From contig BFEA01000006.1 of assembly GCA_003427395.1 (NCBI GenBank), positions 529,218 to 593,217 on the forward strand: a stretch of DNA of 64,000 nt. The letters run 5' to 3'. Positions 29,077 to 64,000 of this stretch are shown one piece after another. Under the pieces are notes generated by a model, which was not told where the DNA came from, searched no databases, and was given only the letters and a program-made list of their open reading frames with translations. Made by a program: the position numbers and the translations under genes. Every line of letters starts with the position of its first letter. Position 1 is the stretch's first letter. Origin of the DNA: Chara braunii (lineage: Eukaryota; Plantae; Charophyceae).

Positions 29077-29111
<35 letters not shown>

Positions 29112-29222: not shown

Positions 29223-29253
<31 letters not shown>

Positions 29254-30173: not shown

Positions 30174-30222
<49 letters not shown>

Positions 30223-31220: not shown

Positions 31221-31287
<67 letters not shown>

Positions 31288-32361: not shown

Positions 32362-32390
32362 CCCTAAACCCTAAACCCTAAACCCTAAAC
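32362..32390. repeat. interstitial plant-type telomeric repeat (CCCTAAA)4
   Basis: Four exact CCCTAAA units. Confidence 0.9.
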
Positions 32391-36194: not shown

Positions 36195-36268
<74 letters not shown>

Positions 36269-36276
36269 GACCATCT

Positions 36277-36328
<52 letters not shown>

Positions 36329-36510
36329 CTGACTTGGTAATGCAAGGCGACCTATTGGCAACAGGTGAAGGTTTATTGGTGGGCGGTATGCCAATCTTGT
36401 GAACTCGACTACGAGATCTGCCTGCAGTGTGTGAACAAGAAAGTATAGAGCACTGATTGTGCTCAAGGTGAGTTGATATGTGTACCTTTTGGACTTCGTG
36501 CCTGACTTGG

Positions 36511-36552
<42 letters not shown>

Positions 36553-37197: not shown

Positions 37198-37261
<64 letters not shown>

Positions 37262-37264
37262 CTA

Positions 37265-37307
<43 letters not shown>

Positions 37308-40300
37308 CGATTCATTGATTGACTGACTGATTGACTGACTGACTGACTGACTGACTGACTGTAGTAATCTTTTTTTTGATTGATTGATTGATTGAAGGAA
37401 CCACACTTGGCTGCCGAAGTGATACGTAGATTGCGGTGCTTCATGTGCGATTGGTCATCGGGTTATCGTTTTGCATGCAAGTCGATTGACCTAGCAATGT
37501 CATTTAGGATTTGTTTTTTTTTTTCTAGCCCCCTGTTCTGTTTGGCTGTTTTTCTTCCTCTTCGAAGTCTGTTTTTGTTGGGTTGTCATCGCCATGTTGA
37601 TCACTTCATTGACTATCTCAGTTGGGTTCCGGTTGTTTGATATCGTGCTACTTACTACTTGACAACTGTCTGAGTCGTAATCTTCCTCCTTTGCGTGCAT
37701 TTTCATGTTCATTCATCATGTGTCTATGTAGGATGTTCCAGAACTCATTTTGTGATGTGAAAGGGGGTGTTTGTTCGGTTTGAATGAAGGCTAGAGGATG
37801 TGTGAAGGTCTGGAGGATTTGACGGAATTCTATGTTTTTACTAACGAGGGCCTTGCCGCGGGGAACATTTATATAATTCATAACGTTTCCCTAGATTTTG
37901 TCGCTTATCTGTCTCTCTTTTGTCTACTCGCGCTCACTTGTTCGCTCCCCAGTCTCAGCATGACTGTTTGGCAACCAACAACTATCGAACTCGGAAGCAC
38001 TTTATCATCGTTATGTGTTTCCTCTTTTTGCGCTAAGCCTTTTCTCGTTTCGTCGTTTCGCTCGGTCGTCTTACGAATGATTGTCAGATCTGCTAATATG
38101 TGTTTATGAGCATCTGCCTACTGGGTTGAATGTGTGCGCGTTTCGAGCATGATCACACGCTTGTGTGATTCTTGTTGGTAATACTACTCGACATGTGTGA
38201 AGAGGAGTCGACCATTATTTGTCCTTAATCTTCTTTCTTAGTTTATTTCGTTTTTTGTGTCTTTTTTTTTTTTTTTCGGTACTGTGATTGGTCATCGGGT
38301 TATCATTTTGCAGGCAAGTCATTTGACCTTAGGTTACCATTGTCATTTGGGATTTGTATTTTTCTAGCCCACTATTCTATTTGGCTATTTTCTTTCCTCT
38401 TCGATTTTATTCATTTTTTTATCTTTAATTTTTCTGTTTTTGTTTTGGTTGTTTTCCTTCCGCTACGAGTCCGATTTGTTGCGAATCGTGAGAAACGTCC
38501 GGCTCGAAAAACCGGATCGAGCGTCCCTAGAGAAGTGACGAAGTGGCCACAGTAATTGTCAATACTATAATCGTAGTCGGTTTGTTGTGCCGGAATCCGA
38601 CCACCCTTGATCACTCTCCCTGCGCTTCCCAGCATAGGAGATTTAGTTGGTCGCGATCCTCAAATTCGAAACGTTTTGCAAATTCGATGCAACTGCGATC
38701 AGAGGAAATGTGTCGGCGGCGAGGACGCTTGTTAACCCACTTTCTAGCAAGGGCCCGGATTGACCATCACGAGAGGAAAATCCGCCATATCGTATTATCT
38801 CCCTTCCCACTTTTGATAGGGGAGATACATTCTCCTGTCGTAGGGCCTCGCTCGTACATGCATTTGCTCGCTTACTGGACTAGGTGCATTCGGATGAGTC
38901 AAACATTCTGAGTGTATTCGGGCCAGAAAGCGTCCAAATGCATGTAGAGTTTTATGTAGTGGATCGAGTCCCTTAGTCTATGGACCAGCTGTTTGGGCCA
39001 AGAGTCAACCCTACTTGCTGAGAGCAACTATCGCGATTGAGCTGTAATCTAAGCACAACCTGACACCTATAACCGTCTAAGCAGTAATGCAGGGTATCTC
39101 CCGTACACATTAGATAACTGTCCGTTTCACTTTTTTATTACTTCACAAGTAGGTCGGACTATGTCTACTAGGGGAGGTGATATGACCAGCCTCCTTGAGT
39201 AAGTCTGTTGCTCGCTGCTCCGTCTATTGGCGGGAACCATCACCTGCAGTGTTGCATGACTATCAACACTTCTTTTTGTCTTTTTTTTTTTCTGTTTCCG
39301 GTTTGGCGCTCTCATATTAAGTGACGATATATATGCCGACGTTGCTAGCTCTTTGCTTTTGCAGATGATGAGGCGAGCATCAGGCTTGTACTAGCAGGCT
39401 TTGCCTTTTCTTATGGAAGAGAATATTTTTTAATAAGTCAATTTTATTTTGAGCATTGAACTTAAAGGCGATAATACCATCCGGATTTTAAAAAGGTAAA
39501 GCAAAGAGAATATTTTGTAATATGTCAATTTTTATTTTGAGAATTAAACTTAAAGGCAATAATACCATCCGGATTTAAAAAATGATAAAGCAGATGGTAC
39601 CACCTTCTCTTTTATGAATATGGTAGGATGTGATTGTCAGGCGTGAACGAGAGTTATTTGTTTTTTTTTTACTATGGATATGGTAGAATGTGAATCTTTT
39701 CTGCTTTGGTTCCCGTTGGTCTTGTCCCGTCATTTGATCTATCTTGGGCTGGGATAGCAATGCTTCATGTGCGATTGGTGATTGGGGGTCGCTTTATGTG
39801 CGATTGGTGATCGGGTTATCGTTTTGCAGGCAAGTGGTTTGCCCGAGCATTGTGATTTAGGATTTTTTTTTTTTTCAGGCCCCTGTTCTGTTTGGCTGTT
39901 TCCTTCCTCTTCCAATTTAAAATTATTTTTTTTGCCTTTTTTTTTTTTTTTTGCTTTGGCGCTCTCATATTATGTGATGATATATACTCCGACGTTGCTA
40001 GCTCTTTGCTTTGGCAGATGATGAGGCGAGCATTGGGACTGTACTAGCTGGCTTTACCTTTTCTGCCGAGAGTTGGGGAGCGAAGGGAAAGTCGAAGACC
40101 AGCTAGGGTAGAAAGAGGCGAATACCCTTGAGAAGTGAGAAGAGAACTTGGTACGGGACGATGAACCTTACCTCCTTCCCGTACTGTTAATCGTTCCCTG
40201 ATTCGCAGGAGGCTTCATTGTACTTTCTGCCCTTCTCCTTTCGCCGTCGAATAGGATACAGTTTCGGGCCACTCCTCCTCACTTCTTGGCCATTTATCTG

Positions 40301-40980
40301 AGCAGTCTCACCCTTCGGAGACCTTCCCTCGAGTGGAGGTTGATCTGGTTTCGACTTGGACGATCCTCTCCGCTCCCAGGGCTGATGCTGTCCGCTAACA
40401 GCTAACTTCCACCCCCAAGCTCGAATCTACATAGAACCCTCAGCTATCCCTTCCCCTTTTTGTTCTCCATCGCTTCCTGTTTACTTTATTAAGTTTATCT
40501 GTATCTCCCCCCGAGCATCGTGACTTTTCGCCAGAAAATCTTCCTTCTTCATAGCCATACTCTCCTATCTTGTTGGAACTCTCGATTATTCCTCTTTTTT
40601 CACCTTTTTCTCTAATTTCTATTACTATTTGTTTGTAAAATAGGTTGGCGTGACCTTTCGCCAGAAAATCTTCCTTCTCCATAGCCATACTCTCCTATCT
40701 TGTCGGAACTCTCGATTATTCCTCCTGTCTCTTATACACATCTAGATGTGTATAAGAGACAGCTTCATAGCCATACTCTCCTATCTTGTTGGAACTCTCG
40801 ATTATTCCTCTTTTTTCACCTTTTTCTCTAATTTCTATTACTATTTGTTTGTAAAATAGGTTGGCGTGACCTTTCGCCAGAAAATCTTCCTTCTCCATAG
40901 CCATACTCTCCTATCTTGTCGGAACTCTCGATTATTCCTCTTTTTTAACCTTTTTCTCTAATTGTTATTACCATTTGTTT
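35809..40980 (-). repeat. right arm of a long inverted repeat
   Basis: Reverse complement of 26735-31581; for example the ORFs beginning MAMEKEDFLAKGH occur on opposite strands. Confidence 0.92.
40725..40762. other. Nextera mate-pair junction adapter (assembly artefact)
   Basis: Exact CTGTCTCTTATACACATCT+AGATGTGTATAAGAGACAG, flanked by an identical duplication (40547-40724 = 40763-40940). Confidence 0.98.
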
Positions 40981-42634
40981 GTAAAATAGGTTGAATCAGA
41001 CGTGGGAAGTGAACGACGAACCACGTAGTCGGTGTGCATGAGAGTACGTAGTGAGAAATCAAGAGCGAACGCCCGATACATTCGCTTGTGGATTGAGCGA
41101 GAGAAAGGTAGCGAGAGGGGGATCGAGGGATCAGAGGAGGGTGGGAAGGGAGAGAGGATCAGAAGGGGAGCGTAGACACAGGGGGTAGGAGAGAGAGTGG
41201 CTTTCCGGAGCTGCTTACTGTCAAGATTCGATTCAAAAAAGTCGCAAAAAGTAAGCAATAAGCTATGCGGCATCCAGTCGTAAACCCACAACCAACTGAA
41301 CAGCGGGCAAACTGATGTATAAGGGGTAATCGAAGTAGCAAATCTCCCACAAACCATTGTCATTGGATGACGGAAGTACTCGCTGGTCTATGGCGATGCA
41401 TGTGAAAGAGGTAAGGAATGAACGAGCGTAGCTCAATTGGTAGACTCATGAGCTGTTGAAAAAATGGTCCATGACAGGGGCCTATGATGTGCAAAGGAGC
41501 AAAGCAGTGGAGAAGATGAAGAGTCGAGGCAGAGTGGAGAAAGAAGATTAGTGGTGATCACCGACTAGTTATATTTTACGATGCAAGTTGCGAGTATTGA
41601 TCTAAAGTTACGAATCTGAGCGATCACAATAAATGATGAATATGAGTGTCATATTGCTGAAAATCCCCTCTTACGAGTGGTTTGGATTTATGACACGGGT
41701 TCTAAGGTACGAAGTAGTTCTTCTCTCTGTCTATCAACGAGAGCAAGTTTGGGCGTTGTCATGCTAAGAATGTCTTGACTGAATCTGGTCGTCCTTTGAG
41801 CCTTATCTGTCCATGAAAGTTGGCTGCCAGAGTGCCCTTCACTCGTTGAAGAAAAAAAAATGATCTTAGCCACACGTGTTAATCAGAATGGAAAGACAAA
41901 ATAAAAAAAGTAAAATGAAGTCCACCACTCAGACATGAGCATGCCACTAACCACTTATCGTCTTTTCTAGTTGAACGTACGTCTGGCAGACTTGCATCCG
42001 TTGTTCGATTGATAGTTTCCCTTGCTTTTTAATCTTCGGTAGTTCTGGCTTATCACGTTACATTGCCTACCGTTTCAATGATTTTGCTTGTTGGGCAATG
42101 TTGGTTGACCTTGTTCGTTAGCGTTTTTCTTTCTTTTGTTGTGGAACCCCAGATCACCACTTTCTTGATTAAGGGGGTTCGCAGAGTAATTTCGAAAAGA
42201 TCTTCGAGTATTATCCTAGGAGTATCTAAATAATTGATGATTTTGTATATCTATTTGTATCTTGTTTTGTATTTTCAGGATTGGAGTTCATTGGACATAG
42301 CAATCTCTGCTATTCAGCTTTAATACTTCATTCAGTGAGTGAGTACAAATGGAAAACTTGGACATGCAGAATGTACGTCAATTTGAAATTTGTCCTTTAT
42401 GCGAGCAGCTTTTGCACCACACAACCTTGGAGAAGATAGTGGAAGGGAAGTGGAGGGGTCACATCAATCCAGGCCAGGTTGTACAAAGATGAGGTCAGAT
42501 CAAAGCATACCTCCTTTTAGAGCAGAAGGTCATATCAGAGCGTTCCAGATTCCAAAAAGGCAGGATTATAGCAAAGCACACCTGTCTGTAGAGCGGAAGG
42601 ATTACTTGAACGCATGTCGGTTTCTAGTAACGTA

Positions 42635-43815
42635 GGATTATATCAAACCACATTTGTTGCTAGGAAGGGTAAACAGAGGAAGGACAAGCCAGGTTGTGGA
42701 AGGCGTAGACAAAAGAAAGGTCGAGCCATGAAACACAAATTAGAGACACAATATAGTCCAGTTCGTTGTCCACAATGTCATGAGGAGTATCAAAATGTAC
42801 ATGGATTGAAAATTCACTTGTCAAGGAAACACGATGTGCACGGTAAACATTTTGAGAAGGCGACAGCACACAAATCACGACGCTTGGCTCGTACGCGAAG
42901 GGGAGTAGAGTCGTCTCGTCGTAGTGGGAAATACAGTGCACATGAGAATGTTGATGATAGGAAAGAGTTCAGTAGTGAAAAAAATCTTGCGAGTGGAAGC
43001 CACTGTGCAGACACCGATGTTGACATAAACAGGGAGGACGGAAGTATACCCCATTTTATTGAAGATCCGAGTGAAAACAGAAGTTTTGCTAGTGATCAGA
43101 ATGTTGTTGAAGCGGATGGAAACTTCAATATTGGAGAAGATACAGAACTCGGGAGTGGGCCAGGTGCAAAAATGAATGTGGAAGTGGGTGCACACCATTG
43201 TGCAGACGATGAGATGGAAGAGGGAAGTTTTGTCAGTCAGAAAAATCGGGAGGATAAAGAACAAACCATTAAACAAGATGGAAAAAAAGATGTGTAGAAT
43301 GGTGAAGTCTTGGTGGATGAAGAGTGCAATGACTCCAGAGAAGATGGAGAGGAGCGAGAAACGAATGTACCCTCCCATGTGGTCAATAGTCCGGAGGAGA
43401 GAACGACACCTTTATCTGCGGAGTCTCAAGAGACTATGGCATATAATGATATGCACATTGCCATGATAGGACAGGTGAATCAGCACACTACAACAGTTGA
43501 CGACTTTCATCGTTCTATGCTCATGATACATGGTAGAGAGGCTGACATGGATGTTGAAGATCTCTTGTGGTGGAGGACACTGTGATGAACGTCAGTGATG
43601 ACTGTTTATTCGATGATGTTAATCCTGAAAAATCCGTGGAATGAAAAATTGAAAGGGCTCTTATGAACAAAGCATTTATCATTTGCCAGGTCTTCCCTAC
43701 TTATCCCAATTCTATGAAAAAGTGTTAATTCAAAAAGAGAAACAAGGACTCTCGGAAGGACAAGGAGGAAGTAGGATTTATGCAACTAAAACAGTAACAG
43801 TTGGTGATATTCTCA

Positions 43816-43817
<2 letters not shown>
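42635..43817 (+). pseudogene. large exon with a C2H2 zinc finger and acidic region, disrupted
   Basis: CPQCHEEYQNVHGLKIHLSRKH (CX2CX12HX4H) in ORF 42614-43297. Reading continues through a stop and frameshifts into the (AG)n tract at 43818. Confidence 0.7.
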
Positions 43818-43890
<73 letters not shown>

Positions 43891-46800
43891 TTTTGATAAA
43901 AAAACACTCTTTGGATATAAATTTTGTAAACGTTTTTGTACTGTTTGATTTTTGTAACTTTTTTACGTTTTTTTTTTATATGAATTTTGTACTTTTCTAG
44001 CTTACCAGAGTGACCCAGGGTAACTTGCTCGTCCGGGCCAAAAATATATATATATATTTTTAAAATATTATATATATGATAGTTATATATATATATTAAT
44101 TAGTAAAGAATTTTGATGAGACGCTGAGGCAAAAATGTTTAGTTAAATTTTCTGCATAACATAGTTTTTTTTCAGAATTTTTTGAATTTTAATTTATTTA
44201 TTTTTTGGGGGGGGACCTTCCGTGGTCCTTGCTCGGTCTTCCGTGGACCTTACGTGGCTCACCTGGGACCCGGGCGGCCCAGCTGTAGTCTGGATACTTT
44301 TTGAATTTCGTAGTTTATTCCTCGGTCTTTTTCCATTTGATTAATGTTTTACTCACATGACCGACTTGAGAATTACTAACGAATTGTGTGGCTCGTTCTT
44401 ATCAAGCAGGTCATGGACCATTTTTTCAAAAATGAAGTCATTGAGAAAGTTACAATAACAAAACGAACAACGAGGAGTATAATTACTGGCCTCCTTGAAA
44501 CCACAATATCTTCTGAAAACGCGTCAATAAATCGGGATATTGATGTCAATGGTCAACTGTTGGATGAAACAGAGGTGAGTGTTTAAATATGTCTGTAAAT
44601 TTTTTATGTCTTTGTTAATCGGTATAATTTCGAAGCAGCCTGCTGTCTTGTGACGCACTTTTGTGATGGTGTATCATTTGCATGGGCTGGTCGCCTTCTG
44701 TTGGAAATTTCTTGTTACAGTCTTCCTGTACTTAGCCCATGATTGTGATTTCTACGACCACGTTGTTAAAAATCGGTGAGTTGGATGTCCTTCACCCAGT
44801 TGCTTGGATATGCATCCGCTAAGGTAAGACTAATAGAATTGTGCTCTATCGTAGGTGTTGTCTCTGCATAGTGGCAAATTTATAATTGTAAATTAGTCAA
44901 ATTTGCCAAAATACCCTCTTAATCCAAACATCCTCATTAGGTGTATGCAAAAGTTTGTTTCCCTCACTCAACTCGCATCTCACCTCCGTTTCGATCAGAT
45001 CTCTTGATTTCTTTTCCACTTGCTCTTTGGTATTTAACAGATTCTCCAATGTCATAGTCCACCACTCCTTCCCCATTGTGACAAGTGCCATTTCCGTTCA
45101 TATCACATCTGTTTTACTTGGGTTTGGAAAGGAAAGTGGGAAGGCTAACTGAAGATAAGTTTCTTCGGTTCGGAGGATAGGAAGGGATAAGGGAATAGGG
45201 AGGACTGTAACGTTGACAAAAAGTAGCAAAGGAACAGGGAGGACTGTAACTCAATTTATTGCAATTATTTTATCAGCTCTTTTTGTATTGTCGGTGATAC
45301 GTGGAGTATAGTTGACAGAAAGGTCTTCGAAATGGAGCAAGATTTTGTGGAGCAATTCTCATACATGTCAGTTGAGATAAATTCCCAGGAGTGAATCTGA
45401 AGATGACATTCTGGAACCATCTTCTCCAGTTCCAGAGAAAGAGAAACCAGAGATTGTCAATCAGGTATATGATTAACTTTTTTTTTCCCCCGTTTGAAAC
45501 ATATGATCTTCTTACTATGAGTTGGTTGTGTACTTGTGTTTTGTAAATTAAGGGTATTTTTTCTTGGGGAAAAAAAGCATGGTAAACATGTATGCCTGTG
45601 CCATCGAGGTGTTTGTGATGCTTCCAATTGTACCACAATTTTTTTCTTCTAACTTTCACAATGTATTTTCTTATTCTGTTCACTCCATGAACTTCAAATT
45701 TCATTACATTTTTATGTTGTTTGAGAACTTGAAAATTTTTAATGTTCTTAATGATATAATATGGTTATTTTTGGACAGCTGTGAGTTTTTCTCTGTCACT
45801 GTCACACTAACACATACAAATATTGTCGTCGGACAAATGTGTATTTGTATAGTTGTTAACAAAATATGAAGCTTAACGATGTTTTTTTTTTTTTTTCATT
45901 TGGCAAACGATTGTTGTTTTTTTTCCATTTTGAAAGATTTATTTGCTCTGGTTTTCTCCCTGCATTTAAAGAGAGAACAATGACATCGGAACGTCAAGTT
46001 GAATGTATAGGATCAGTCAAATTGCAAATTTAAGAACATGCTCATTTTTTATTTAACTCAATGTATTTAATTCACTTTTGTATTTCTACGTAGGTGAATT
46101 TTGTGGACGAATCTCTAAGCTCTCAAATTTAGGATGAAGTTCGCGAGATTGTTCTTGACCAAGTTGAAAGAGCTGCATCAAGATGGGTAATATTTTTCTA
46201 TTTCACTTGCAATTATTTATTTTTTAATCATTTTCTTCAATGATTGATTATTCAAAAACGGGAGACGTAGTTGTAAGAGAAAGAAATAGACAATGTGAAG
46301 ATGTCAACTTGTTGGTGGAGAACAATGTTTTCATAAGTTTCTTTTCATCTTTTTTAATGGGGGGGTATGAAAAGGAAAAAGGAGAATATCACAGAAAGGG
46401 AGTGTAGTGCAGTCAATCCTTTAAACCACTAGTACCTTCACCAGTGTTGGAAAATTTGGAAAAACAGGATGTCGGAAAAGACCGTGAAGGAGATGTGCTC
46501 ACATCAGTACTCTAAGGAATGCATTTATCCAGAAACGTAGCCAGTTTCATTCTTTATATCTGTATTTTGCTTTCTTTTTTTGTAATCCACGTTTATAATT
46601 TCATAAACATCGTCAGTACTCAAAGGGTAACAGGTCCAAAACTAAAATAAGTGGTTGTCCGTCCAAATTTATATTGTTTTAAATTTTCATTCCTTCCCTG
46701 ATTTTGTTTTTTGTCCAAGGTTGCTCTGTACCAAATTCGGTGTTGTTTGGCGCCCGCGACAGATGTGTATCGTAAGTATTGTGTGTTTAATGTTGTTTGG

Positions 46801-47019
46801 GATCCGAGCCAAAATGTGGAGAACCGTTGTATGACTTGCTGGATTTCATTCATAATATAGGTGGACTCATTGTTGAACGCATGCAGTTCCTCGACAATGG
46901 ATATGGTCTTACTTTTATTGACTTCCATATGAATTGATTAGTGGATTGACGTTGTCTTTTCCTCATCCTAATTGCTGTCAAGGGTCTGTCTTTAGGTCTG
47001 CATAGTTTATTGGTGAGAG

Positions 47020-47975
47020 AGAGAGAGAATTATTTTGTCGCATATCATGAAAAGGTTTATATAACCAACAATGATTTGAAACCCTTACGTGCACGAAAGT
47101 CGATTAAAGTAAGATTCTTCACAAGTTTGTGCGCTTTGACTTCCAGTTATCAATTATTGTCTTTATTTATTCTTCTTTATTTTTGTGATGGTTTACAGAG
47201 GTCGGCTTCGTTAGGAAAGATTGTCCAAACATTTTTGAAAGTCGATGTTGCGCTTGACTATGTTCATCGCCAAATCATGTCCAAACAAAATCCTTGCTAT
47301 GTTATTTTGGCATGTGAGTTGCCACCACCACTCTCAGGCTTTGATTATGTTGTCATGCAACCGAATGATTTTTTAACGAGGTGAGTGATGTACAATTAGA
47401 TATTGACCTCCTTAAACCACCACTCCACACGAGCCTAAATTGAAGAACCAAGAGTTGCATTTTTCCTGGCCTGCCTGCTACAGTAACATGCTTCAAAGAA
47501 AAATCTCGGCGTTCCGGTATCAGCCTACCTTGAAACTCAAGTGCCCTACATTGTGCCAGCATATGACACCAAACAACAAGGGGGAATAAAGGAAGAATAA
47601 CGAAATCCAGATAGGTAAAAAAAAGACAAGATGAATGATAACAAATGCACTTTCCTCCAAAACAAAGAAGTAAAAAAAAGAGGAAAAGAAGATATTGCGC
47701 ACTGGTTTTCATTATGGATGTACCGAATCACAAATACAGTTGTGTACATTCAGCAACGAACTACTTTCAACGAGATGTCGGGGAAGGCCCTGTCGAGGGC
47801 ACACTCACACGAGTACCTTTCAGAATGTATCAGACCACTATTGCAGCTAAAGTTTTGTCATTGTTTTTTTTTTTTTTTTTTTTTTTTCATTTCCTTATTT
47901 CCTAGTGGCCTGCCAGCAAGGCAGGGCGTATTCCACTTTTCATGGAGGGTGTACTCACATTAGTACATTCCAATA
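47020..47975 (+). pseudogene. possible Ulp1/C48-like cysteine protease exons, degenerate
   Basis: In order: VYITNNDLKPL, PYIVPAY, AHWFSLWMYRITNTVVYI, CQQG...GC. This resembles the Ulp1 pattern ITxxDL / PI..HW.L / QxxxxDC. Motif-level only; the catalytic Asp is not evident. Confidence 0.35.
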
Positions 47976-50900
47976 TGTATCTAACGGCTATGAGAGGCAA
48001 ATCAATGTTTTTTTTTTTATGTCTTTCTTTTGTTTTTTTTCCTCCTATTCCGGAATGCCCTCACTTTCCAGAAAGTATCTAATCTATAATACGTTCAAAT
48101 CTATCTTCTTATTCATTGTCCCCCCCCCCCCCCGTAAGATTACTGTGTGGTGTCCTGCCAGCGAGGCAAGGCGTCCGAACCTAAGCCTTGCCTGATCACT
48201 GTGGTTTTTGCTGCGGGAATCGGTACGAAAACATTTATTTTGATAGGGTCATTGGAGTGGTGGTTTAATAGTGTATAGTCGTATGTTTGTTTGTTTTTTT
48301 GTTTTGCGGTGCAACTCTCATTTTCTAGAATGATATTGTTTTCTTTGTTCTTCAACTTACTATAACATGCTATCAATTCCCTACTGTATTAGAAGCGTCT
48401 GATCTTTGTCTAAGCTCCTAATTTTTTCGAGTGTCTGGGTCATAGGCATTTTCTTCGGAGGGACTCTCCACCACCCTACTGTCGTCAACAGAGATTGAAC
48501 CACGTCACCTGTTCAAGGAAACTTTGAGGTCGCTAGACCCTCGATATCCTCTTCCTTCGCTGTGTTTGCTCAATATATGTGTGACCTTATAACTTTCTTT
48601 GTGCTACCTTTGCACACTGTTTACGCAACCTCCTGCTTCATACTTTTTTTTTTTAATTTTCAAAAAAATCTGAAAAAAAAATGTTATGTAAATCTAGGAT
48701 CCCAACCGTGCCGCAAGGATAGCCAGCCCGTGCAAGGACCAGGGAAAGTCCCTGCAAAAAAAATATATATATATTATTAAAAAAACACACACAATTTTTT
48801 TTATAAAAAACTATGTTATGCAGAAAAATTTTCAACAACGTTTGCTCCTGGGTCACATTAAAATTCTTTACAGTTTATTTTTGCAAAAAATATTTATTTA
48901 TAATTTTTAAAAAGTTTTTTGGCACTGACGATTAAGTGACACTTTACTCTGCTGTCCTATATGTAAATGTAATTATACAAACAACTTCTGTTTGAAAGTT
49001 TTGCCTAGATTTATTTTTTTCAGACCGTAAAAAAAATATTATTTTTTATTTTAATCATTAAAAAATATATATATGTTCGACCGAAAATGTTTGCAAGCCG
49101 TTCACACGAATGCTCGTGTTTAGGTGTTGGCGAAACCTGTAAACACGTTTGATGTGCTATGCAAGCCTGGAGTCGTTTTTTTTTTTTTTTTTTTTTTTTT
49201 TTGTATGATGTACACTCTATATATGAGCGATAAGTTTCATTAAAAAGACCTTTAGGGTTTCGTATAAATGAAATAATAAATTTATGAGAATTCGGACCTC
49301 CGTTGACCATTTTTTTCAGAAATTTCACAATTCTCAATATGGAATTTTAAACCGTCCTACAGACACCAAATTTGACACGTTACTACCTTGACCCAAAACA
49401 AAAACAGACAATTTTTTTTTTCAAACCCACAAAATTTTGACTCCCAATCTGAACGCTGACTCGTACGAGAAGCACTTGCACCTCAAGCACGAGGAACAAC
49501 AGAATCACCAACTTGATAAAGGATATTATGAACGTAGAATTTGAATACTCACCAGACTTCCTGCATGTTATGCACACATACAAGGACATGAATGCAAATG
49601 ATCGTCTTCTCTACGAGCAAATTGATCATGTAAGTTCAGAAACCCCTTTTTTGTTTTTCACAATTATATAAACGTCATTTTTTTTAATTAGGTGAATAAT
49701 ATTATCAATATTGTGTTGTTGTTTTTTTTTTTTTGCTTTATATCCGTTGTGAGTAGTAACAGTCCGATTCTGTTTCCACCGACAATTCAAAATCCAACAA
49801 GATACATCCTCACGTTCCATTGATATGGCAGAAGGACACGATAGCAACATTGATTACTTCATAAACCTGGAGGATTGACTATCATCTTGCTATTTCTTCA
49901 CCCTTGCTCAGAGGTTTGTCTTCCTAAACTTGTCCTGTTATGCCTTAAAACAAGACAAAATTAAGAGATATGAAAACTAAACAGCCTTGACGGTGTCGAA
50001 GTTATCCAGTGGGAGGTTCATACTGTCAGTCGTGCTCCGTATCTTTGTAGACCTCTTGCTCTCTGACATAGAACAAAATTAGGTTGCCTGTATTGAGTTT
50101 TGTACGACCGATGAGTTAACTATTTTACCTTGTCCCCTTTTTAGTTATGTCAATCATTCCCTCGTATGCATGAGTCGTTTATGACCACTAGTTTACCATC
50201 CAACAAGCATACCCTTGTGAATTTGGCTCTGATTTTTTGTTGCATGTGAGGATAGTCTGAGAGTGAACGCTTGATCTTTGCTTAGGATCTGCCCCTGGAT
50301 CAACGACCATATGATTGGCAATGCACATACTCTTTTGTGGATTGGAGAAACCTTAAATCATTGAGGTGCATCTCTCCTTCCATATAGACCCAGAGTGTCA
50401 CCTTGCTGGTCATGCCGAACATATCTTCTTTGTCTTGAAAAATTTAGAGTAAATGACCTTTCGGTTTTTTCTATGAATTCAAATTGGGGTGTCCTCCTAA
50501 GTGTGTGCCAGCTTCTGTGTCTGCCCTAGGTGAAGGCGGGCTCTGAACTTTTGATGCGATATTTCTTTATTTGGGACTAAGTGCAAGTGGGAGTCCCGTC
50601 GGTGGGTTGTTGACACTTACAGGGCATTAGTTGGTTACCACACCCTAATGTACAACAGCTTCGGTTCATGAGCCTTCTAGGCTTCTTTTACACAAGTCTA
50701 ACTGCACAGCAGGAAGCCTCTAAGCCTCGGACTTCGTCAGGTGCTTACAGCAGCCCGACTGACTGGGTCATGCGAAAAATGTGGGTTGGACGTGAGATTC
50801 AACGCGGAGGTATGCGAAGTTGCTATTGGGAACTCGGTCCAGTTTGGCAGGCAGCCTTTCGAGGTGAGTCTTTTCCATACAGGGAAGAGCTTGCCTGCAG

Positions 50901-52235
50901 TTCATGCATTTTGGCGCTTGATGCATATTTTGCAGCACTGCTCTTTTCATGCGCATGAGATTGCTAAGCACTAGTGACTGAAATTGAACATGTGCGAGGT
51001 GATGTTGGGAGTTGCATAGCAGCAGCACCAGAGCACAGCCAACCTTAGTCGGGGTGGGGCTTAAAGAACCCAGCATATGTGACATGTGGTCTTCCTTGGA
51101 TGATGTGGAGATGAACTGTGTGGAAAGATGAGGGGATGAGACAAAGGGAGAGTCGGTGACATGTGAAGTTTGCCATTGGATGATATCTTCATGTACATTG
51201 AGATGTTGCTGACGAGCTAACTCGTTGTGACCTCATAGACAGGCTAGTGTAGGATGGGTCGCTGAACGTAGATTGGGCACTATATGCGAGATAGGATAAT
51301 TGACTTTGTGGCATTGATGGTGGTGGCGAAAAGTCGAGCTACATTGTCAATTGTACTCAATGTTTTGTTCTCACTTGGTGTATTTCATGGTGGATTTCTG
51401 CTTTCTGGTTTGAGTATGAGACTATCTAGTTTTCGATGGATGTTGGAACTTGGTTTTTGTAAAAACGCTCTCCTCCTTTTCCTTGCACGTGCTTGTTAGC
51501 GGTAAAATATCTAAACTATCTCATAGCGGAATACGTAGGGCAAATTTGTTAAAAAAAATCGTAAAATTTGTATATACTAAATTTCTTTTTCTCTTTAGAT
51601 TAAAAAAAAAAAACATGTTTTTATGACATGTTTTTTGCTCTATTCCATGTGTCTGCTGGATAATCCTGGATTCATACGATCTGAGTGCATGTGTGATCTC
51701 TGAGTCAATGGTGGTATATGTTTGTCCCTATTGCTTGGTTGACTTGTCTGGTTGAATTACTGATCATTTGGTGTGTTTTTATTTTGCAGAAAACACAATG
51801 TCACTTGTATTTCGATCTCGAATTTTCACCAAGTTTGAATGAAGAGAAGGATGGGAATGCAATGGTCGAGACGTTATTGATGATAACGTATGGCCTTATA
51901 GGATCAGAGTTCCCTCATTTGCGTGACTAAAGTCCATCGATATTAGAGACCGATTCATCGAGGGAGGACAAATTCTCCAGACATCTGCTGATACATGTTA
52001 ATGGTTTATTGTTTTCAAATAATCAAGAGGTGTTAACGATTGTTAATAAGGTAAGAATAATGCAAACATTTATATTTGATAACAAAGAAAAAACATATTT
52101 TACGGTCAATATTCCAAATAGATGCTCAATCGTTGTTTCAAAATTTCTTAACATTTTTGTTGGTCGAGTCGTTGCTATATCCAGATTGCATGTGTTTACT
52201 GAACATTCTACTATTTAAACATTGTGCCACTGAAG

Positions 52236-53673
52236 TCCATGTACAACTGAAGATCGAAGACCAGGAAGACGACGCTTATGTAGACTGCCGCTCAACCACG
52301 GAAGGTCTCTCCTCTCTCCCTCTCTCTCTCATATCCCTCTCATCAACAGTGTGCTCCCCTCACTCAAGGACCACCATCGCCAACCAGCAGCGCTACTATG
52401 GCTGCCTGGCGCCCACTGCCCCTGCAGTGCACCTCTCACTACTAGCGCCCGTGCGCACGACCCAACCTGCAACAACGCAGCAGCGTGACCACATTGCCTA
52501 CCAAGGCCTGAACGAGCTTCCCATCGCTGCTCACTTTCCTATATGGAAAGTGAGGTCACCCTTTGCTGCCTCTGGGCCTAGCTGGGCAAGGATCGTGTAG
52601 CTCTCAGTTGGACCCCAGTATCTGTGCCCAGGCCGAGTTGCAGTTACGCCCTGGGCCCTTCACAAGCGGTTATCGAGTAGCTGAAAATTCAGGAATGAAA
52701 ATTCTGAAGTGAGAGTTTTGGGCAGTCTGAAAATCCTAAATGGTCCTGAAGTGGTGAAAGGTCCGAAGACGCTGAAAACCACCTGTTTAGGTAGGGTGCA
52801 TCCTGAAGTGGTGAAGGGTGTCTTGAAGTGGTCAAGTGAGAGTTTTTGGCAGTCTGAAAATCCTGAATGGTCCTGAAGTGGTGAAAGGTCCGAAGACCAT
52901 GAAAACCACCTTTCACCAGTTGAGGATGCAGTCTGCCTAAACATGTGGTTTTCAGGGTTTTCAGAGTTTTCACCATTTCAGGACCATTCAGGATTTTCAT
53001 ACCTGAATGGTCCTGAAGTGGCGAAAGGTCCGAAGACCGTGAAAACCACCTGTTTAGGCAGGCTGCATCCTGAAGTGGTGATGAAAAATACGACTGTTGT
53101 TAACCTTCTCTCGGACCCTTTACAGTTTAGCACGACCAGAATGTCCACGGCCTCCACATGTTTGTTGCAATCGCATTGGCTTATGGCTGAGATGTGATAA
53201 CAATGCTGAAATCTCATTGGTCTACTACTGTGGTGTGATGTGTCAGCCTCTGGTAGCTCACGCCTAGGGCCTCAACTATATGGGGCCCTGAACTCAACTG
53301 CCTGTCGAGGCTGCAACTACCGGAAAGAGTCTGAAAAGGCTCACATTTCTCTGTAACCAACTCATATGCTGCAAATGTCTAGCATCCAGGGCAAAATGGC
53401 AAAAGTAGGCCTTGCATAATTTTTCCAAGCCCGCCTTCACTTAGGGCGGGTACACTTTATGCTCGGGGCCTCGACATATCAAGGATGAGGCCCTAAAGGG
53501 GCCTGTGTGGGGCATAACCCTTAGAGCCCAGATGAACCCTCAGAAACTGTTGCGTCGAAGATACAAGCCCACACAGAGTTTCACACAACCATTTGACGTG
53601 ATCACACTGGCCTAAACTCAGGCCTTAACACAAATTTGCAGGCCCGCCTTCGGGCGGGCACGGCTTTTACTAG
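52236..53673 (+). mobile_element. non-autonomous Helitron-like element in a PrimPol intron (5' end tentative)
   Basis: 3' hairpin GCCCGCC-TTCG-GGCGGGC (53642-53659), then 10 nt, then CTAG (53670-53673). Confidence 0.55.
52661..53111 (-). mobile_element. second copy of the 4240-4703 element, inverted
   Basis: Ends CACAAGCGGTTATC and GTTAACCTTCTCT. TSD TGGGCCCTT / CGGACCCTT (7/9). Confidence 0.85.
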
Positions 53674-56028
53674 CATTGGCGAGGAGTCAAATCCTTGCAA
53701 ACATCTCTTCAGGTTTCAAAATTCAATCATAATGTTTTAATTTGGTCTACTTCATTTTTTTATCCCAAACCTTCGAAAGTTTTGAACTTGGGTTCATTAT
53801 ACATGTTTCTTATCCTGTGGTGTTTTTCGCATATGTCTATGCAGATTTGTCAACATATTGAAATCAATAAGGGAAAGTTTGCAGCGTACGAAAATCTGTT
53901 TATTGAAACAAAGAAGGGTAGACGATTGTTCATTGACCTCTCATTGGACAAAAAAAAGCAGCTGATGAGGTTGCCATTTTCTATCAAACAAGATCTTTCC
54001 TCATATTTGGAGCCGACAAGTCGTTTTGGTATTCCAAAATCTACGGTATGTTTACAAATATTTTTCATTATAGTTTCTTCATTTTTTTTATTTCTACTGT
54101 TAAGGAATTTAGTGGGTCTCGCTTTACCGTTCGCTCAGGAGGTGACTATCAGTGTTAAGGATTAAGTTGCAGGTACTTTCCAGGGTCCGGTCTCACTCGG
54201 CAAATTATCGGTATTTTTCGGGGTCCGACGTTTTTGTACATCAGGTGTCCGTAGTCCAAAGCCTAGATGCGGCGCCAATGGTGAGAGGTGTATCTTGGGA
54301 TAAAGCAAGGAAGGACATTGGGTGTATGACGCTCTCAAACATGTGGGGTTGATCACTGTAGGGTGGTGCAGGGCTCTAGTGGGGGAGGGTGTTGGGTGAA
54401 GGACGCGCTCAATCGTGCAATTTATCCATAGTGATAGTGTGGCTGGAAGGAGGGGCAACTTCATAACTGTTGCGCACTCCTTAGCGTACGGATGGTAATG
54501 TGGAGACAAGGGACAATCAGTTGAGGAGTGTTGTATCAATCTGAAAGTCTTGTATCAACCTGAGAAAACAAAAATTCCAAAAAACTACGTCACCTTGTAC
54601 GTTTTGTACTCCACCGTACAAAAACGAAAAGACAAAAAATTCAAAATCCAAAAAATCTGGAAAAGAAAATGTTATGCAATAGCGCAAAACAAGCAACATG
54701 TGTTTGGGCATCACCTGCAGATTCTTATTAGAATATAAGAAAAACAAAAAACGGGTAAAAAAAAAAAGTCATACGGGACGCTTAGCGTACGAGTGCAAGA
54801 GTACGAATCCGTACTCGTACGGGGGGGGCATACATGTTGCAACGCAGCTTAAGAGTTTCCTATTGTGTTTTTCTAGAACTTTTTTTTTTCCGTCTTTTCA
54901 GACTTATTATTTTTTGGGTGATCAAGCGGTTTTATTTTTATTATGTGTAGGGGATGTCGCATTTACCTCTTTGATTCATGCCCTTGCATTGATTTTCAGC
55001 CTAGTCGCGACAACTTCACTTGTTGTATTAAATTTTCGTGAAGTAACCAAAAACTAGTTGCTTCTGTGTTTTGTAGATCGAAGATTTGGAGCACATGAGA
55101 AACATGTTCATCACAACTTACGACATGTCTGAGACAAGTGAATTTTCCAAAGGGGTAAGTTCCAGTAAGTTGACCCATGAGTGCACTGAGCAAAGTTTTT
55201 CATACATGTCTGGTTTTCAACGCTATTTAAGGAGTTTGTTTTTCGTAGTTATCGAGATAAACATGTTCCCGAGGGGGAAGGCAAAAGGCGGAGGATTAGG
55301 GGAAGTCAACGGAGGGTGAGGGAAGGTGAAAACGCACTGCATGACAAGATCTGCTTTTTTCGTTGTTGTTTTTTTTCTGTTTCGTTTATGTATGTATGTG
55401 CGAGCGACGATAAAGAGAGAGAGAGAGAGACATGGGGGTGGTGGAACGGTTATGGGGAAGGGGGGGATAAAGGCAAGAGATCGGACCATGTGGTTATGCT
55501 GCGTAATGCTGCGAAACGAAGGTGGGGCCTGGGAGGAAGGTTGCCTCCACCATTAGTGCATCACCTGTCGTATTTGTTTTTCCACGTGAAGCCACAACAG
55601 GTCATGTAGTGTGTACTAATACGTGTCTTCTCTTCATTCACCAGAAAAAAAACGGCTTGGATGAAATTGTTGCTTCTGATGATTAAACATTGAAGACTGA
55701 TTTTATTCAACATGTCTTCAGTTCATATTCTGCAACAAGTCAACCACATAAGATAGCAAGATCGCCATTTCCAGCTCTTGATTGATTCTTTTATTCTCAA
55801 ACTAGCAAGCCAGCATCGTTTGCCCGGTGAAACATGTGAGTTTCTTCTCATGCTTTGTACTCAAACATATGCTTAACTTCTATGGAAGAGGTAGTTTTAA
55901 TTGTTTTCAGTATACCGAAACTTATAATTCTTTGTGGGGTCTTTTTACCATTCGATATGCAAAAAGTTATGTTCTACAACTTTTAAATCAGCATGTATCT
56001 GAATACCTCAATATCATCTTATGTTATA

Positions 56029-56614
56029 GGGAAAAATATTTGAGCTGCCCCTGAAATTTCCATTAATTTTCGTGCATGCCCCGCTGACGTCCGACTTACC
56101 CTGTCGTGCCCCTCTGACAGCGAATGATGTTTCCAGATAACCCCTGGTGTCATCTGGGCCTGAAACGTGTTTCATATGCCCCTACCTGTATCGCTCTTAA
56201 ATTTCCAGTATGCCCCTACCGGATAACCTTTGAGAACCAGCAGAAACATTTCCCATATGCCCTTACCGGTACCGAGCATCTTTACAGCATGACCCTGTGG
56301 CTGATGTTGACACTCTCTACCTTTCCCCTGGCCCTGGGAGAGGATCTTTCTATTGTGCCTCTGATGCAGCATTTTCGGTGGCCTACTGCAAGGGCGTCAC
56401 GAAAAGATGCATACCCCTTGTGAGAGCATTTCGAGGAGGTACCGACGAAACGTCATCCGCGGTCCGGTAAGGGCATAGCGGAAAGTTGTGGCTCATGCTG
56501 ATAGGGGCCTGCAGATGTCTTCTGAGGCACCAGGGGCACAACAGGGTAAGTCGGCCTTCAGAAGGGTACGCAGCAAATTAATGGAAATTTCAGGGGCATC
56601 TCGAAAATTTTCCC
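56029..56614. mobile_element. Mutator-like MITE
   Basis: ~85-bp imperfect TIRs (GGGAAAA...GCCCCTGAAATTTCCATTAATTT). 9-bp TSD TATGTTATA / TATGTTCCA. Confidence 0.85.
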
Positions 56615-57157
56615 TATGTTCCAATACTCTAACATCATCTTATGCCAAGACACTTTTTTCTGACATTTATTTCATTCCTTTTTCGAAAATTCAACAGGTG
56701 CTATAAGGAATGTGACGATGTTCTCAAGAGATCACAATCTTGTTTACAACATCAAGGGCACACGTTACTGCAACAATGTTAAACAACAACACTATAAAAA
56801 TAATGGTGAGTTAAAAAGAAGGGTTGTTTTATATCATCTGCATTGGTTATTTTTTCTTATTTTCAGTTAATATTTGACAGCACTTGAATGAACTAAATTG
56901 TTTGCTGACTGGTTATATTTATTTTTTTTCGTTTCTTTGCCTGTCCTATGTTTTCATAATACTGTGTTATTTTCCAGCAGTTATGTATGTTCTGAATTGC
57001 AATGCACGGGCGTGTCATACAAAATGCCATGACTTCCCCTGCAATGGTACGTTGCTCTCCATTTTATGTTTTTTGTCTCTTGCCCAGCTGCTGATGGGAT
57101 TAAGTTCATGTTTGTGTTTATGAGAGAGATAGAGAGAATGTGTGTGTGTGTGTATGT

Positions 57158-57210
<53 letters not shown>

Positions 57211-57874
57211 GCACAGTATGTGTGAGAGAGAGGGGGAGAGCCTTTGTGTGTGTGTTTGTGTGAGAGAGAGAGACCATGTGTGTGTTTGTGTGTGTGAGTG
57301 AGAGAGAGAGAAAGAAAGAAAGAGCATGTGTTACACTTGCAACACACGTACTTTTTCAGTACCTCTCTAAAACCCCTCCCATTTGCCCCAGTGAAAAAAA
57401 AAAAAAAAAAAAAAAAGAGTTATGGTGTTGCAGTTGCTTGAGGAATCATAGCAGTTTCTTCAGCACCTCCTGTTGTTTCAGCAACTATATGTTTTGCTCA
57501 AACAATGTTCTCCTGCAACTCCTGCAGCACCACTTTCAGCTGAGGCAGAAGCTGCAGCTGCTGCAGTTGGAGCATCTTCAGGTGTTGTTTCACCCATTGC
57601 AACAACTTCTTCTACAGGTGCAACAACATTGCCAGCTATTGCAGGGGTGTGTGTATGTGTATGCAAAAGAGGGAGACATGGGGAGAGACAGAGAGAGAGA
57701 GAGAGAGAGAGTTGCCAGTCCATTCCATTTCAGTGTGTGTGAAAAGTTGGAATTTTTTTTTTTCTCTCTCTCTCGCTCGCTCTCTCTCTCGCTCGCTCTC
57801 TCTCTCGCTTTCTCTCTCTGTATGTGGGTGCATTTTGGGTTTGTCTGTCTTTTTCAATCTATATCAGCTGTCTG

Positions 57875-58500
57875 CAGGGTCACCAGCCCGTACGTACGGA
57901 GGTCCCCGGGCAGACCTCCGTACGTACGGGCGTTTGGGGTCCCGTACGGGGTCCTAACCCGACGGCGTTCGGCCCCCGCCAAAAATTATTTCGGGGCCTA
58001 AAAATATGTTTTTTGTTTTCGAATTTTTTTTGGTGAGTTTTCTATGACGTCACGTACATGCATATAAAGTTTCAAGTCATTTAGCTCAGCCAAATAAGAA
58101 TTAAAAATCGCCAAAGATGGCGGTGTCAAAATGCGCTAGGCCACGTTGTTTTTCACTTTTCACTTTTTGTTTTCACTTTAGTTCGGGGTCTAAATAATTT
58201 TACTATTTTTTTAAATTTTTTGAGTGGGTTTTGCATTATGTAAAGTACACATTTGTAAATTTTCAGGGCCTTTAGCTATGCCAAAAAAAAATAAAAAATC
58301 GTCAAGTATGGCGGTGTCGAAAACGTGATTGTGCACTCACTAAATTTTTTTATTTTTTTATTTTTTGTTATTGTTATTATTAGTATTTATTTTTCGTATT
58401 TTATTTTTATTTCAAATGTGGTAAGGAATTTGGATGTTATGCTCAGACAAATCTTGTTTAATTTATTTTTCTTCATAACATATTTTTTTTCAGATGTTTT

Positions 58501-58532
<32 letters not shown>

Positions 58533-58664
58533 GGGTCCGCGTTCTGCCCGAACGACCAAACGCATCCCCAAGGGGTCCCATACGTTCGGGCGTTCGGGTT
58601 CGGGCGTTCGGGTTCGGGCGTTCGGGTTCGGGCGTTCGGCCCGTCCCGAACGCTGGTTACCCTG
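57875..58664. mobile_element. hAT-like MITE
   Basis: TIRs CAGGGTCACCAGC / CAGGGTAACCAGC. 8-bp TSD GCTGTCTG / GTTGTATG (6/8). Subterminal CGTACG and GTTCGG repeats. Confidence 0.82.
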
Positions 58665-59461
58665 GTTGTATGTGGGATATTTTGTATTTTTCCTCCGCTC
58701 TTTTTTGGTGCATATCTCCGTAGATCCTGTGGTGATGGAATTTTGTTTCCATAATTCGGTTTTCGTAATTTAGATTGCTCGTTTTCGTCGCATTAGGGAC
58801 AAGGCTCCTATGATGACAGTTTCTTTTTCCGTCGTTTTTTAATAATTTTTCAAGGAGGGTATCAGCCAGGGCGGCCCGGCCATGCAAGAGCCAAGGAAGG
58901 TCCAAGTGGGAAAAAAAAAAATGAAAAAGAAGTATGTTATGCGGAAACATAAACTGGGAGTTTTTGGCTCGGGGTTATATCGAAATTCCTTCCCAAATTA
59001 AAGAACAAATAAAGAATATAAATATTTTATTTTCTTTTTAATTTTTGTGGCCTGGTCAAACAAGTGTCACCGGGCAACTCAGGTAGCCTAGTTTTTTAAT
59101 ATTTTATTTTTCAATGGTTTGGTCTTTGTGGCTTTGTGTATGTCCGTCTACAGTGCGCTGCGTCAACAAGATTGCCTTAATTTTATGTTTTTTTTACATT
59201 ATCCTTTTTTTTCATTAAAAAAAGGAAATTGTGGCCCTTCTGTTTCTGTTTGGGCAGGTTATGTGTCACCAAAAGTCAATATTCCTGCACGATGCTTTGA
59301 GATACTTCCAGCTGGTAAGATCCATAATGTTTAATCTTGTGTTGGTATTTTAATTCTTTGTGGTGTGTAAAATTATTGTTTCACATTTGTTTAACTATAT
59401 TGAATGCAGTGATATACTTACTGAGTGCGTGATACTTGATTGTATAGCATTTGGAATGCTT

Positions 59462-59656
59462 TTACTCTATGTATATGAATCAACAACTTTGCAAAATGGG
59501 TTCTCAATGAACAAGCGATGGAGGTGACGTCAGTCCTAAGATTTGTTATAGCAGAATTGCTTGTACTCTATATCTATGAATCAACAACTTTGCAAAATGG
59601 GTTCTGAATGAACAAGCGATGGAGGTGAAGTCAGTCCTCTGATTTGTTATAGTAGA
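59462..59656. repeat. ~101-bp tandem duplication
   Basis: Two near-identical copies of ...atgaatcaacaactttgcaaaatgggttct...gatttgttatag. Confidence 0.9.
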
Positions 59657-60559
59657 TATTGACGTAAAAAACGAGTAATGTTTGTATCTCCGTACAATGG
59701 TCTGAAGTGGTTCATTGGGCATTACATCCGTGTCAAGTCAAAGCGGAGAGTTTCAGTCGCTGTCATAAATCTCCTCATTCATGTGTTCCCATTCTTGTCT
59801 TGTTGGGGTCTGGTTAGCTTTGTACATGCATTAACCTGATGTTGGGGTGCGTCTTTGTGTCCCGGTGCGGCCAAGCCAACCTGTCTGCCCTTCTTCTTTT
59901 AGTGTATATAGTTTTTAGGTATTTGGCCCCATCGCATCTAGTCTTGGGCATTGGGCCCTAGTGAGATGGATGAACCTAATGATGGGACAACTCATTCTGC
60001 CTCCGTGTGAGCAAGTTTACTTGTTTGATTGTTTTCTTTTAGTGTGTGCAGTTTTGTGCATTGGACCCCATTGGGAGCAGGCTTTGAGTTGCAGTTCGTT
60101 TAATTAGTATTGAATTACAGTTCGTAAAAAAATTGTCAAAAACTCGTCATCTGACCTATTCACTTTTGTGTTATTTCTATGCGTGTTTTTTTTTCTTGCA
60201 GGTATCACTCCTTTGGTATCTGTCTCGAATGTTGCAAAAGGCAAAAAATGTTGATACCTTTGCACGCCTGTCGGTATGAATGATCCTCGTTCCTGCAGTT
60301 TGCCCTGCCAACAATTCGAAGGGCAAATATTTCGGTCGTTTGGCCCTGTCATGATTGATCCTCTCCTTTGTTCTGAAATGGAAAAGGGGAATCAGATTAT
60401 GATTAAATTTTGTAGGTAGTAGTTATTGTGACCACCACCCTGGTCTTGAATTTGAATCTCATAATTGACGAATAATGTGTTGGACCTTGTACTAATCGTG
60501 ATTCGAACTTGGGTCCGACTGTTGAAAGTAGTCCAGGATTGTTTTTCAGTTGTACTTCT

Positions 60560-62062
60560 CGCTTGAGGGCTCGATCCTAGTATCGGCAGGTGACATTATA
60601 ACAGAGATTGTGAACGACGTCTCGGCAGTTTGGAAGACAAGGTTTCGAAGATCATGATTCGGCACCAGGCCGAGGAGAACAGAGACCGTAAACGACATCA
60701 AGCCGAGGAACTTGCTACTCGGGAGAAAGAGGAGTTGTTAAGGGTGGAGAGAAAAAAGAAGAATCGTTGGAAAGCGGAGCAGGAGATTGAAAAATTGAAG
60801 ATGGCGCTGTCAAGGATGGAGATGGAGCGACGACATCGTACGCCTGAAACGAACCTACGTGACAAACTTGAGGAGGTGGCGAAGGGATCTGTCCGGAAGT
60901 CAGCAAAAGAGAAGGAACCGGTGGAGCAAGGACCTGTAACCGTGAAGCTTTCGTTGTTGACAACAGACGACAATTGAGAGGGTTAAAAAAGGAAGAGGTT
61001 CTTGCGATTTGTTCCAAGGAGGGAATCACTTACACTACTCTGGATCGTGCTAAGACATTGTCAACAAGAAAACAACGTAAGCGTTTGGTGAGCAAGGCCC
61101 GGTGGACATCCCCGATGACTCCATCAGTTCTGCAGATATCGTGAAGATTGGTAATGGGGAGACTGTTTCTTAGTGTCTATCCCGAGTGCAACCCATTTAT
61201 GGCATTTGGCTAATTGGTGCAGTAACCTTCGATCTTCTCTCCCTCGCCTCCTACGCTGTCGGGCTGTGAATCTATTGTTTGTTTAATTGTGATTCTTTTG
61301 ATTGTGACTGACCAGATTCCATGGGCTTATAAGTTCAAGGATTCAATTCTTCAGTTGATTGATGATGGTTTGAATCTGAGTAAGTGTGAAATCTTGTTGG
61401 TTTATATTCTTGTCTCGCCATGGTCTTGCCATGTTTATGTCGGTCAAACCCGTAGGGATCTGTGTACACGATGGAATGAACACGTGTTTCGTACACAACA
61501 TGTAGCTGTCGTAGAAGGAGGGAAGCATATTGAGCACTTGTATCGTTGGTTGGGAGGGTGCAAAATTCACCAATATGTTGTTATTCCTGTTTGCTCTAGT
61601 GACATCAATATCGTCGACAATTGTGAGAAGTTTTTTATCTGGCAGTCATGTCCTTTCTTGAACGTCCGTGATAAACCTACCAGACCTAGGAGAGGTCATT
61701 AAGGGCTTTGTGAAAGGCTACGTGCTAAGAAAAGAATTGGTAATGTTGTGAATGATGTGAATAATCCCTGCAATGATCGTTCTCTCGTCAAGTTTGTTTC
61801 TAGTTCAGGTGGGCCTTCGGTAAGTCTTCGCCAGATTCTGGATGATTGCCACAGTAAAGGAGTACATTCTTGTATTGTTGTCTACTGCGGTGGCTCTCTT
61901 CTTTGTGCTCAGTGGAAGGTACTTCGGACGTGTTCTGGTTCTGCAGTTATTTCTTGTAAATTTGGTGACCGACAACTACGTAGAGCTCGTGAGTGGTTGA
62001 TTGGTGGCCTTACCCTTAGCTTTGTCTCTATTACTCCCTTGTCAATTCGTCTGGCACGGTGA
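60560..62062 (+). mobile_element. Penelope-like element 5' fragment: coiled-coil ORF followed by N-terminal GIY-YIG endonuclease; RT not present
   Basis: ORF 61289-61702 has VYILVSPWSCHVYVGQTRRDLCTRWNEH...LYRWL...CEKFFI...FLN. Upstream is a charged coiled-coil ORF (60630-60977). Confidence 0.7.
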
Positions 62063-63833: not shown

Positions 63834-64000
63834 CAGGGTAACCGGCGTTCAGGACGCGCCGAACGCCCGAACCCGAACACCCGAACACGTTCGGCCGTTA
63901 AGACCGAACGCGGACAAAAAAAAAAAAAAAAAAAAAAAACCATCGTCCAAAAACTCTGAAAACAATATATGGTATGCAGACAGACAAACTGAACAACATT
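63834..64000. mobile_element. end of a second hAT-like MITE of the 57875-58664 family, abutting an (ATT)n tract
   Basis: CAGGGTAACCGGCGTTC...CCGAACGCCCGAACCCGAAC matches the reverse complement of ~58600-58664. Confidence 0.8.

Follow-up and report, generated by a model that had tools for sequence, protein, structure and literature searches.

In eukaryotes, PrimPol is normally encoded by one conserved repair gene. A single PrimPol gene is listed for Arabidopsis (PMC6801657). In the human enzyme, Asp114, Glu116 and Asp280 are catalytic, Lys165, Ser167, His169, Arg291 and Lys297 bind the triphosphate, and the sugar is packed by Arg288 together with residues 289-291 (PMC5088642). The template is gripped by motifs Ia and Ib, a hold that was proposed to serve the polymerase activity and of which the replicative primase PriS has weak equivalents only (PMC5088642). 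Here, we describe a PrimPol locus on the + strand of a 64,000-nt stretch of the Chara braunii genome (the window, whose coordinates are used throughout unless another locus is named). Taken as a whole, our analysis favors the view that the locus is a dead copy of an old, host-derived Chara PrimPol paralogue family, which was probably carried as transposon cargo together with a C2H2 neighbor, had a 137-aa N-terminal extension and contained no protease.

The locus is PrimPol. We compared the window model exon by exon with a hidden Markov model (HMM) of eight host PrimPols and obtained five matches, all colinear with the host protein: the 51790 exon (E 3e-12 and 2e-10), the 53845 exon (E 2e-5), the 56698 exon (E 7e-11) and the 56981 exon (E 0.002). 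Consistent with the initial annotation of this stretch, motif I (FDLEF, 51811-51825), motif II (KFSRH, 51970-51984) and a C-H-C-C Zn finger of the UL52 type (C56769, H56790, C57025 and C57040) are present. The nine exons from which PrimPol was rebuilt at that stage are not all compatible in phase because 55645-55835 requires a frameshift. The best matches of the PrimPol exons are land-plant and green-algal PrimPols (37-41% identity). Pfam run on single exons did not match PrimPol, and a motif pattern scan retrieved host PrimPols only. When exon 53845-54045 was searched against 1.84 billion proteins, the single real match was Chara braunii CBR_g81559 (60% identity), itself similar to human PrimPol (E 3e-12) and to plant PrimPol models (template-modeling (TM) score 0.90). 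CBR_g81559 lies on a different scaffold (locus L001), so that the gene is multicopy, as had been suggested. A second paralogue, CBR_g55784 (locus L059, on BFEA01001072.1), was found via the C2H2 open reading frame (ORF) discussed below. Each of the three loci is on a separate scaffold; PrimPol itself is shown in the window and in L001, the PrimPol part of L059 lying outside the flank that was read.

Where does the gene come from? Seven of its introns agree in codon and phase with those of two land-plant PRIMPOL genes (one is offset by a codon; rough p 5e-9) and none is common with the chlorophyte Myrmecia. An eighth intron falls within an unalignable linker and one plant intron has been lost. 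Because the land-plant intron sites are kept, the gene descends from a streptophyte host PRIMPOL by DNA-level copying; neither retroposition nor a viral source explains it. A giant-virus origin, with an endogenous viral element carrying a primase of the C962R-like AEP kind, might have been envisaged, since the language-model features of the protein lie nearest AEP_C962R clusters (0.95), but the plant intron positions and best sequence and structure matches to green-plant PrimPol (37-41%, TM 0.90) make it exceedingly improbable; moreover, no relatives were found in viral or metagenome contigs, and neither a viral context nor a fused D5 helicase was found. The paralogue evolved fast, as previously proposed: its branch in the tree measures 3.9 against a median of 0.66, a length that leaves its placement unsure.

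All three copies carry stops or dead splice sites. The window copy, rightly called dead at the outset, is interrupted by stops at 45378, 46130, 51928 and 55684; its frame shifts near 55780, and its acceptor at 49577 is dead. The copies nevertheless diverged under purifying selection, both in PrimPol between the window and L001 (pN 0.36 for a pS of 0.86, synonymous sites being saturated) and in the N-terminal extension between the window and L059, where the ratio of nonsynonymous to synonymous substitution (dN/dS) is 0.37 over exons U2-U4 (p 0.001) and 0.14 for U2, introns being about 80% identical. A single intact expressed copy, as is expected of a host PRIMPOL orthologue, was not found. In 43900-49750, three poly-A RNA runs (4.2 Gb) gave almost no depth on the exons and revealed no splice joints, intronic repeats alone being covered. 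Repeats of ~250 bp resembling miniature inverted-repeat transposable elements occur in the introns (44000-44290, 48690-48920 and 58860-59100), and L001 and L059 have members of this family too; poly-A reads that stem from other copies give good coverage of the first two.

Transposon genes usually show this pattern, in which copies are dead and dispersed and yet diverged under purifying selection. The three copies point to active lineages that shed them, which fits transposon cargo, and we consider carriage by a transposon probable. Alternatively, the family could be an ordinary host family, in which an ancient second PRIMPOL paralogue under relaxed selection left pseudogenes by segmental duplication. 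This would account for the retained host introns, for the L059 intron sequence, which is similar as in a segmental duplicate, for the local inversions and duplications in the window and L001, and for the fact that neither transposase nor termini were seen. However, it requires several once-functional lineages, given that 3/3 copies are dead and yet purifying selection is found at two divergence depths, and no expression was detected on the exons tested. We thus regard an ordinary host family as unlikely.

Several observations weigh against transposon carriage and the reading built on it. No transposase, terminal inverted repeat or target-site duplication was found in the 64-kb window or within 10 kb on either side of L001 and L059, where ORFs were inspected and selected Pfam families scanned for transposases, flanks of this size being short for this genome. 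No repeats bracketing the cassette were found, and the left edge shared with L059 has no terminus; homology between the two loci ends at insertions on both sides, the left edge being cut by one. Word-based protein searches (154-490 aa; 349-1111 aa) did not find an intact family member. One search, with a profile made from an alignment of two natural proteins and a single window exon, gave no Chara host PrimPol, which is not evidence of its absence. The loss of motifs Ia and Ib described below is known from one dead copy only, and the anchored test of the ModN exon was devised after the alignment had been seen. A sister gene considered in 12700-26700 was rejected. The element itself is not demonstrated at the window locus.

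What kind of enzyme did the family encode? Motif III has been rewired: FID (53929-53937) is present as initially reported, but the motif departs from its host form, VY[ST]RNRxFR having become LDKKKQLMR. Both catalytic-domain copies (window and L001) have Gln at position 288 (QLMR), where 32/32 hosts have Arg; both retain the catalytic and triphosphate-binding residues and the Zn finger. In addition, the window copy lacks motifs Ia (RQ) and Ib (QR) in exon 47199. Retention of the former together with loss of Arg288 and Ia/Ib suggests a primase-biased enzyme with altered sugar selection. We infer the following mechanism. The paralogue was captured from the host PRIMPOL, introns included, and then spread, most likely as cargo of a large DNA transposon alongside the neighboring C2H2 ORF. 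The enzyme probably made short primers on single-stranded element DNA, during either donor gap filling or copy-out replication, and host polymerases would have taken over from these primers. That a eukaryotic DNA transposon family captured the host PRIMPOL long ago and retooled it as a dedicated primase for its own DNA during transposition is a tentative proposal, which we hold to be possible rather than probable.

The region ahead of motif I differs from the first gene model. An exon at 49363-49629 had been proposed, and its start at a splice acceptor was taken to indicate a fusion. However, plant PRIMPOL has two or three exons before the catalytic core, so that an acceptor in this place is normal and no sign of fusion. 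Reading 49363 as a full ModN exon would take two frameshifts and was rejected for this reason; homology places the exon at 49578-49629, where the acceptor has mutated to cac, so that the 49363 exon is mostly intron. In plants, the corresponding short exon (YKxMN...YEVIQE) is entered in phase 2, and its L001 counterpart lies behind a normal acceptor. Consequently, the preceding exon is required to encode ModN and to finish in phase 2. Exon 47199-47380, previously called protease-like, has such an end. In a post hoc donor-anchored test with three host ModN blocks, it beat 5000/5000 shuffles (p 2e-4) and ranked 1/905 among the donor-anchored candidates of the window; blind HMM and profile (hhalign) tests gave weak signals (p about 0.03, E 0.16). 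The exon is predicted to fold as helix, strand, strand and short helix. The exon is therefore most likely the ModN module of PrimPol itself, completed by 49578-49629. Peptidase_C48 was not matched at E<=1, and the fold searches with the 60-aa U5 model, which told us little, did not match any protease. A protease part in this protein is very unlikely, and we reject a protease fusion.

Upstream of ModN, exons U2 (44410), U3 (45312) and U4 (46094) are joined in phase 0 and encode 137 aa over 44410-46186; translation may start from the ATG at 44413. Among the upstream GT-AG exons initially listed, the borders at 44410, 46094 and 47199 were confirmed, and the first two exons recur in paralogous loci. 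Those at 45277 and 47905 failed: the 45277 acceptor yields a stop, the phase-0 acceptor at 45311 matching the exon start of the paralogue, and the 47905 exon is part of a poly-T unit that is repeated locally in tandem. Window 41990-46421 has a copy in L059, ~76% identical in nucleotides and with the exon order unchanged. U3 is similar to a + strand exon of L001 at 9901 (p 0.008), and the L059 copy of U4 to L001 + strand 12909 (p 3e-4). In L001, the U3/U4 homologues are tandemly duplicated on the PrimPol strand, upstream of PrimPol, and the U2 homologue (39% identity, 8448-8287) lies 1.4 kb off on the opposite strand. Since its donor phase fits the U3 acceptor, a local inversion would be the simplest reading. 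It had been asked whether the upstream exons ever accompany PrimPol elsewhere; for U2-U4 they do, because the deeply diverged L001 has both. The extension is a family-specific region that recurs in L059 and L001 and is under purifying selection. Its length is close to that of the variable N-terminus of plant PrimPols (96-141 aa), but it cannot be aligned to it. No family was found for the extension, U2 having no PDB, Pfam or Atlas match; an RPA-like OB fold was considered for U2 and rejected for this reason and because the prediction is mostly helical. We can only guess that U2-U4 serve in partner binding or targeting. L001 contains further minus-strand exon candidates (9634-8690, within 8287-13000) to which nothing in the window corresponds. 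The first 20 nt of U2 (44410-44429) are the exact reverse complement of part of a tRNA-like repeat (41456-41475); this match, whose 20-mer is also in L059, is probably due to chance.

Was the C2H2 ORF spliced to this chain? The finger at 42767, which the initial annotation placed in front of PrimPol, is real in pattern but falls below Pfam cut-offs. The ORF was copied along in L059, its stop being at the matching place, and the finger core is under selection (dN/dS 0.26), whereas the remainder drifts (0.82). A phase-0 donor at 43474/5, common to the window and L059, permits an in-frame splice to U2, which begins 766 nt (largely repeat) after the C2H2 stop. In L059, the ORF stays open for 60 codons past the donor, to its stop; U2 opens with a conserved ATG that follows its acceptor by 3 or 4 nt; and no C2H2 was found upstream of U2 in L001. 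Splicing of the C2H2 ORF to U2 and PrimPol is thus slightly doubtful, the alternative being a separate gene of the same cassette. The indel pattern was rejected as proof of the 43474 donor, because frameshifts also strike clearly coding 5' repeats, and an "NLK.." match (42379 against L001 8965) was rejected as being in the wrong frame once L059 was known. The initial annotation had joined these parts into one C2H2, Ulp1-like protease and PrimPol protein on a Mutator or CACTA element. The same-strand exon chain, the shared donor and the short distance to U2 speak for it. However, the supposed protease exon fits ModN, the 47906 and 49363 exons are artefacts, the C2H2 ORF passes the donor in L059 and is missing before U2 in L001, and no Mutator or CACTA feature was found. 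Such a multidomain protein is highly improbable, and we retain a host-derived PrimPol with its own ModN module, probably carried as cargo beside the C2H2 ORF. The corrected features are listed in Table 1.

Table 1. Gene model of the Chara braunii PrimPol cassette (window coordinates).
Feature	Positions	Strand	Remarks
C2H2-finger and basic/acidic disordered ORF, about 430 aa, decayed	42349-43644	+	56% to CBR_g55784; finger 42767-42838
Extension exon U2, 55 aa	44410-44574	+	92% aa to L059, dN/dS 0.14; 39% aa to L001 8448-8287
Extension exon U3, acidic linker	45312-45464	+	stop 45378; open in L059; similar to L001 + strand exon 9901
Extension exon U4, short acidic segment	46094-46186	+	stop 46130; exon end matches in all three loci
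PrimPol ModN exon (most likely)	47199-47380	+	motifs Ia (RQ) and Ib (QR) eroded; phase 2 end like plant exon
PrimPol exon YKDMN...YEQIDH	49578-49629	+	acceptor decayed to cac; orthologous to L001 15454-15505 and short plant exon
Motif I (DxE) and II (KFSRH) exon	51790-52050	+	stop at 51928; host HMM
Motif III exon, derived (FID...KQLMRLPFS.K)	53845-54045	+	host HMM; CBR_g81559 match
PrimPol linker exon	55077-55154	+	splice sites and position match L001 17321
PrimPol linker exon, ends SPFP	55645-55835	+	stop 55684, frameshift near 55780
Zn finger, first half (C, H)	56698-56805	+	host HMM
Zn finger, second half (C, C)	56981-57046	+	host HMM
Post-finger exon (G-Y-x-S-P)	59258-59314	+	phase 1, as in plants
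Candidate last exon with stop	60202-60254	+	splice site and phase only; no homology support

The window contains other repeats. A minus-strand Gypsy long terminal repeat (LTR) retrotransposon occupies 1-12709 (LTRs 1-551 and 12095-12709; integrase 1913-2488) and contains extra unrecognised ORF pieces (9188-11697). A 460-bp internally palindromic repeat is common to this element (4240-4703) and a PrimPol intron (52661-53111; 90% identical). A large inverted duplication (26735-31581 and 35809-40633, arms 80-93% identical) surrounds a 147-bp satellite (32676-34683) and includes telomere-like ACCCTAA at 32361-32390. At 40725-40762, 1.2 kb upstream of the cassette, a Nextera mate-pair junction adapter within an exact 178-bp duplication marks an assembly artefact. 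A Penelope-like fragment (60500-62060; GIY-YIG, E 0.003) directly follows the last PrimPol exon and is followed by an 82-bp satellite (62259-63626). Inverted repeats with GTTCGGGC arrays (58450-58664 and 63834-64000) bracket 5.2 kb including the last two PrimPol exon candidates; they may represent a single small element present twice.

As a paralogue that is multicopy and under selection, with its nucleotide-binding loop rewired and its template grip eroded, the Chara PrimPol provides a natural test of the residues that distinguish primase from polymerase (PMC5088642). If the transposon link is true, a cut-and-paste-type element recruited a host primase to copy itself. We found no description of such an element-borne host primase in the literature, most subscription journals being outside the search. 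What the window copy contributes is the ancestry of the enzyme and a corrected gene model, not the element itself.

Like host PrimPol (human PRIMPOL, Arabidopsis AT5G52800), the Chara protein has an AEP core with ModN and ModC, motifs I-III, a C-H-C-C finger (PF03121 type) and plant introns (PMC5088642, PMC6801657). Unlike it, the Chara family is multicopy and dead, has a very long branch and an N-terminal extension, has lost one plant intron and has replaced Arg288/Asn289/Phe290 by Gln/Leu/Met, Ia/Ib being eroded in the window copy. If carriage holds, the family would resemble Polintons, Teratorn and Helitrons with RPA, which are mobile elements with replication machinery (PMC6431247). However, those elements use protein-primed PolB, a herpesvirus primase or RepHel with RPA, whereas the Chara cassette has a captured, intron-containing host PrimPol, and neither an integrase nor a capsid or Rep gene was found with it. 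Finally, IEE, a bacterial PrimPol-helicase acting on copy-out-paste-in insertion sequences, provides a case of an AEP primase in transposition (10.1101/2023.06.07.543989). IEE is bacterial, fused to a helicase and promotes excision, unlike the Chara PrimPol, to which it is a functional analogue only, likened by function and not by sequence.

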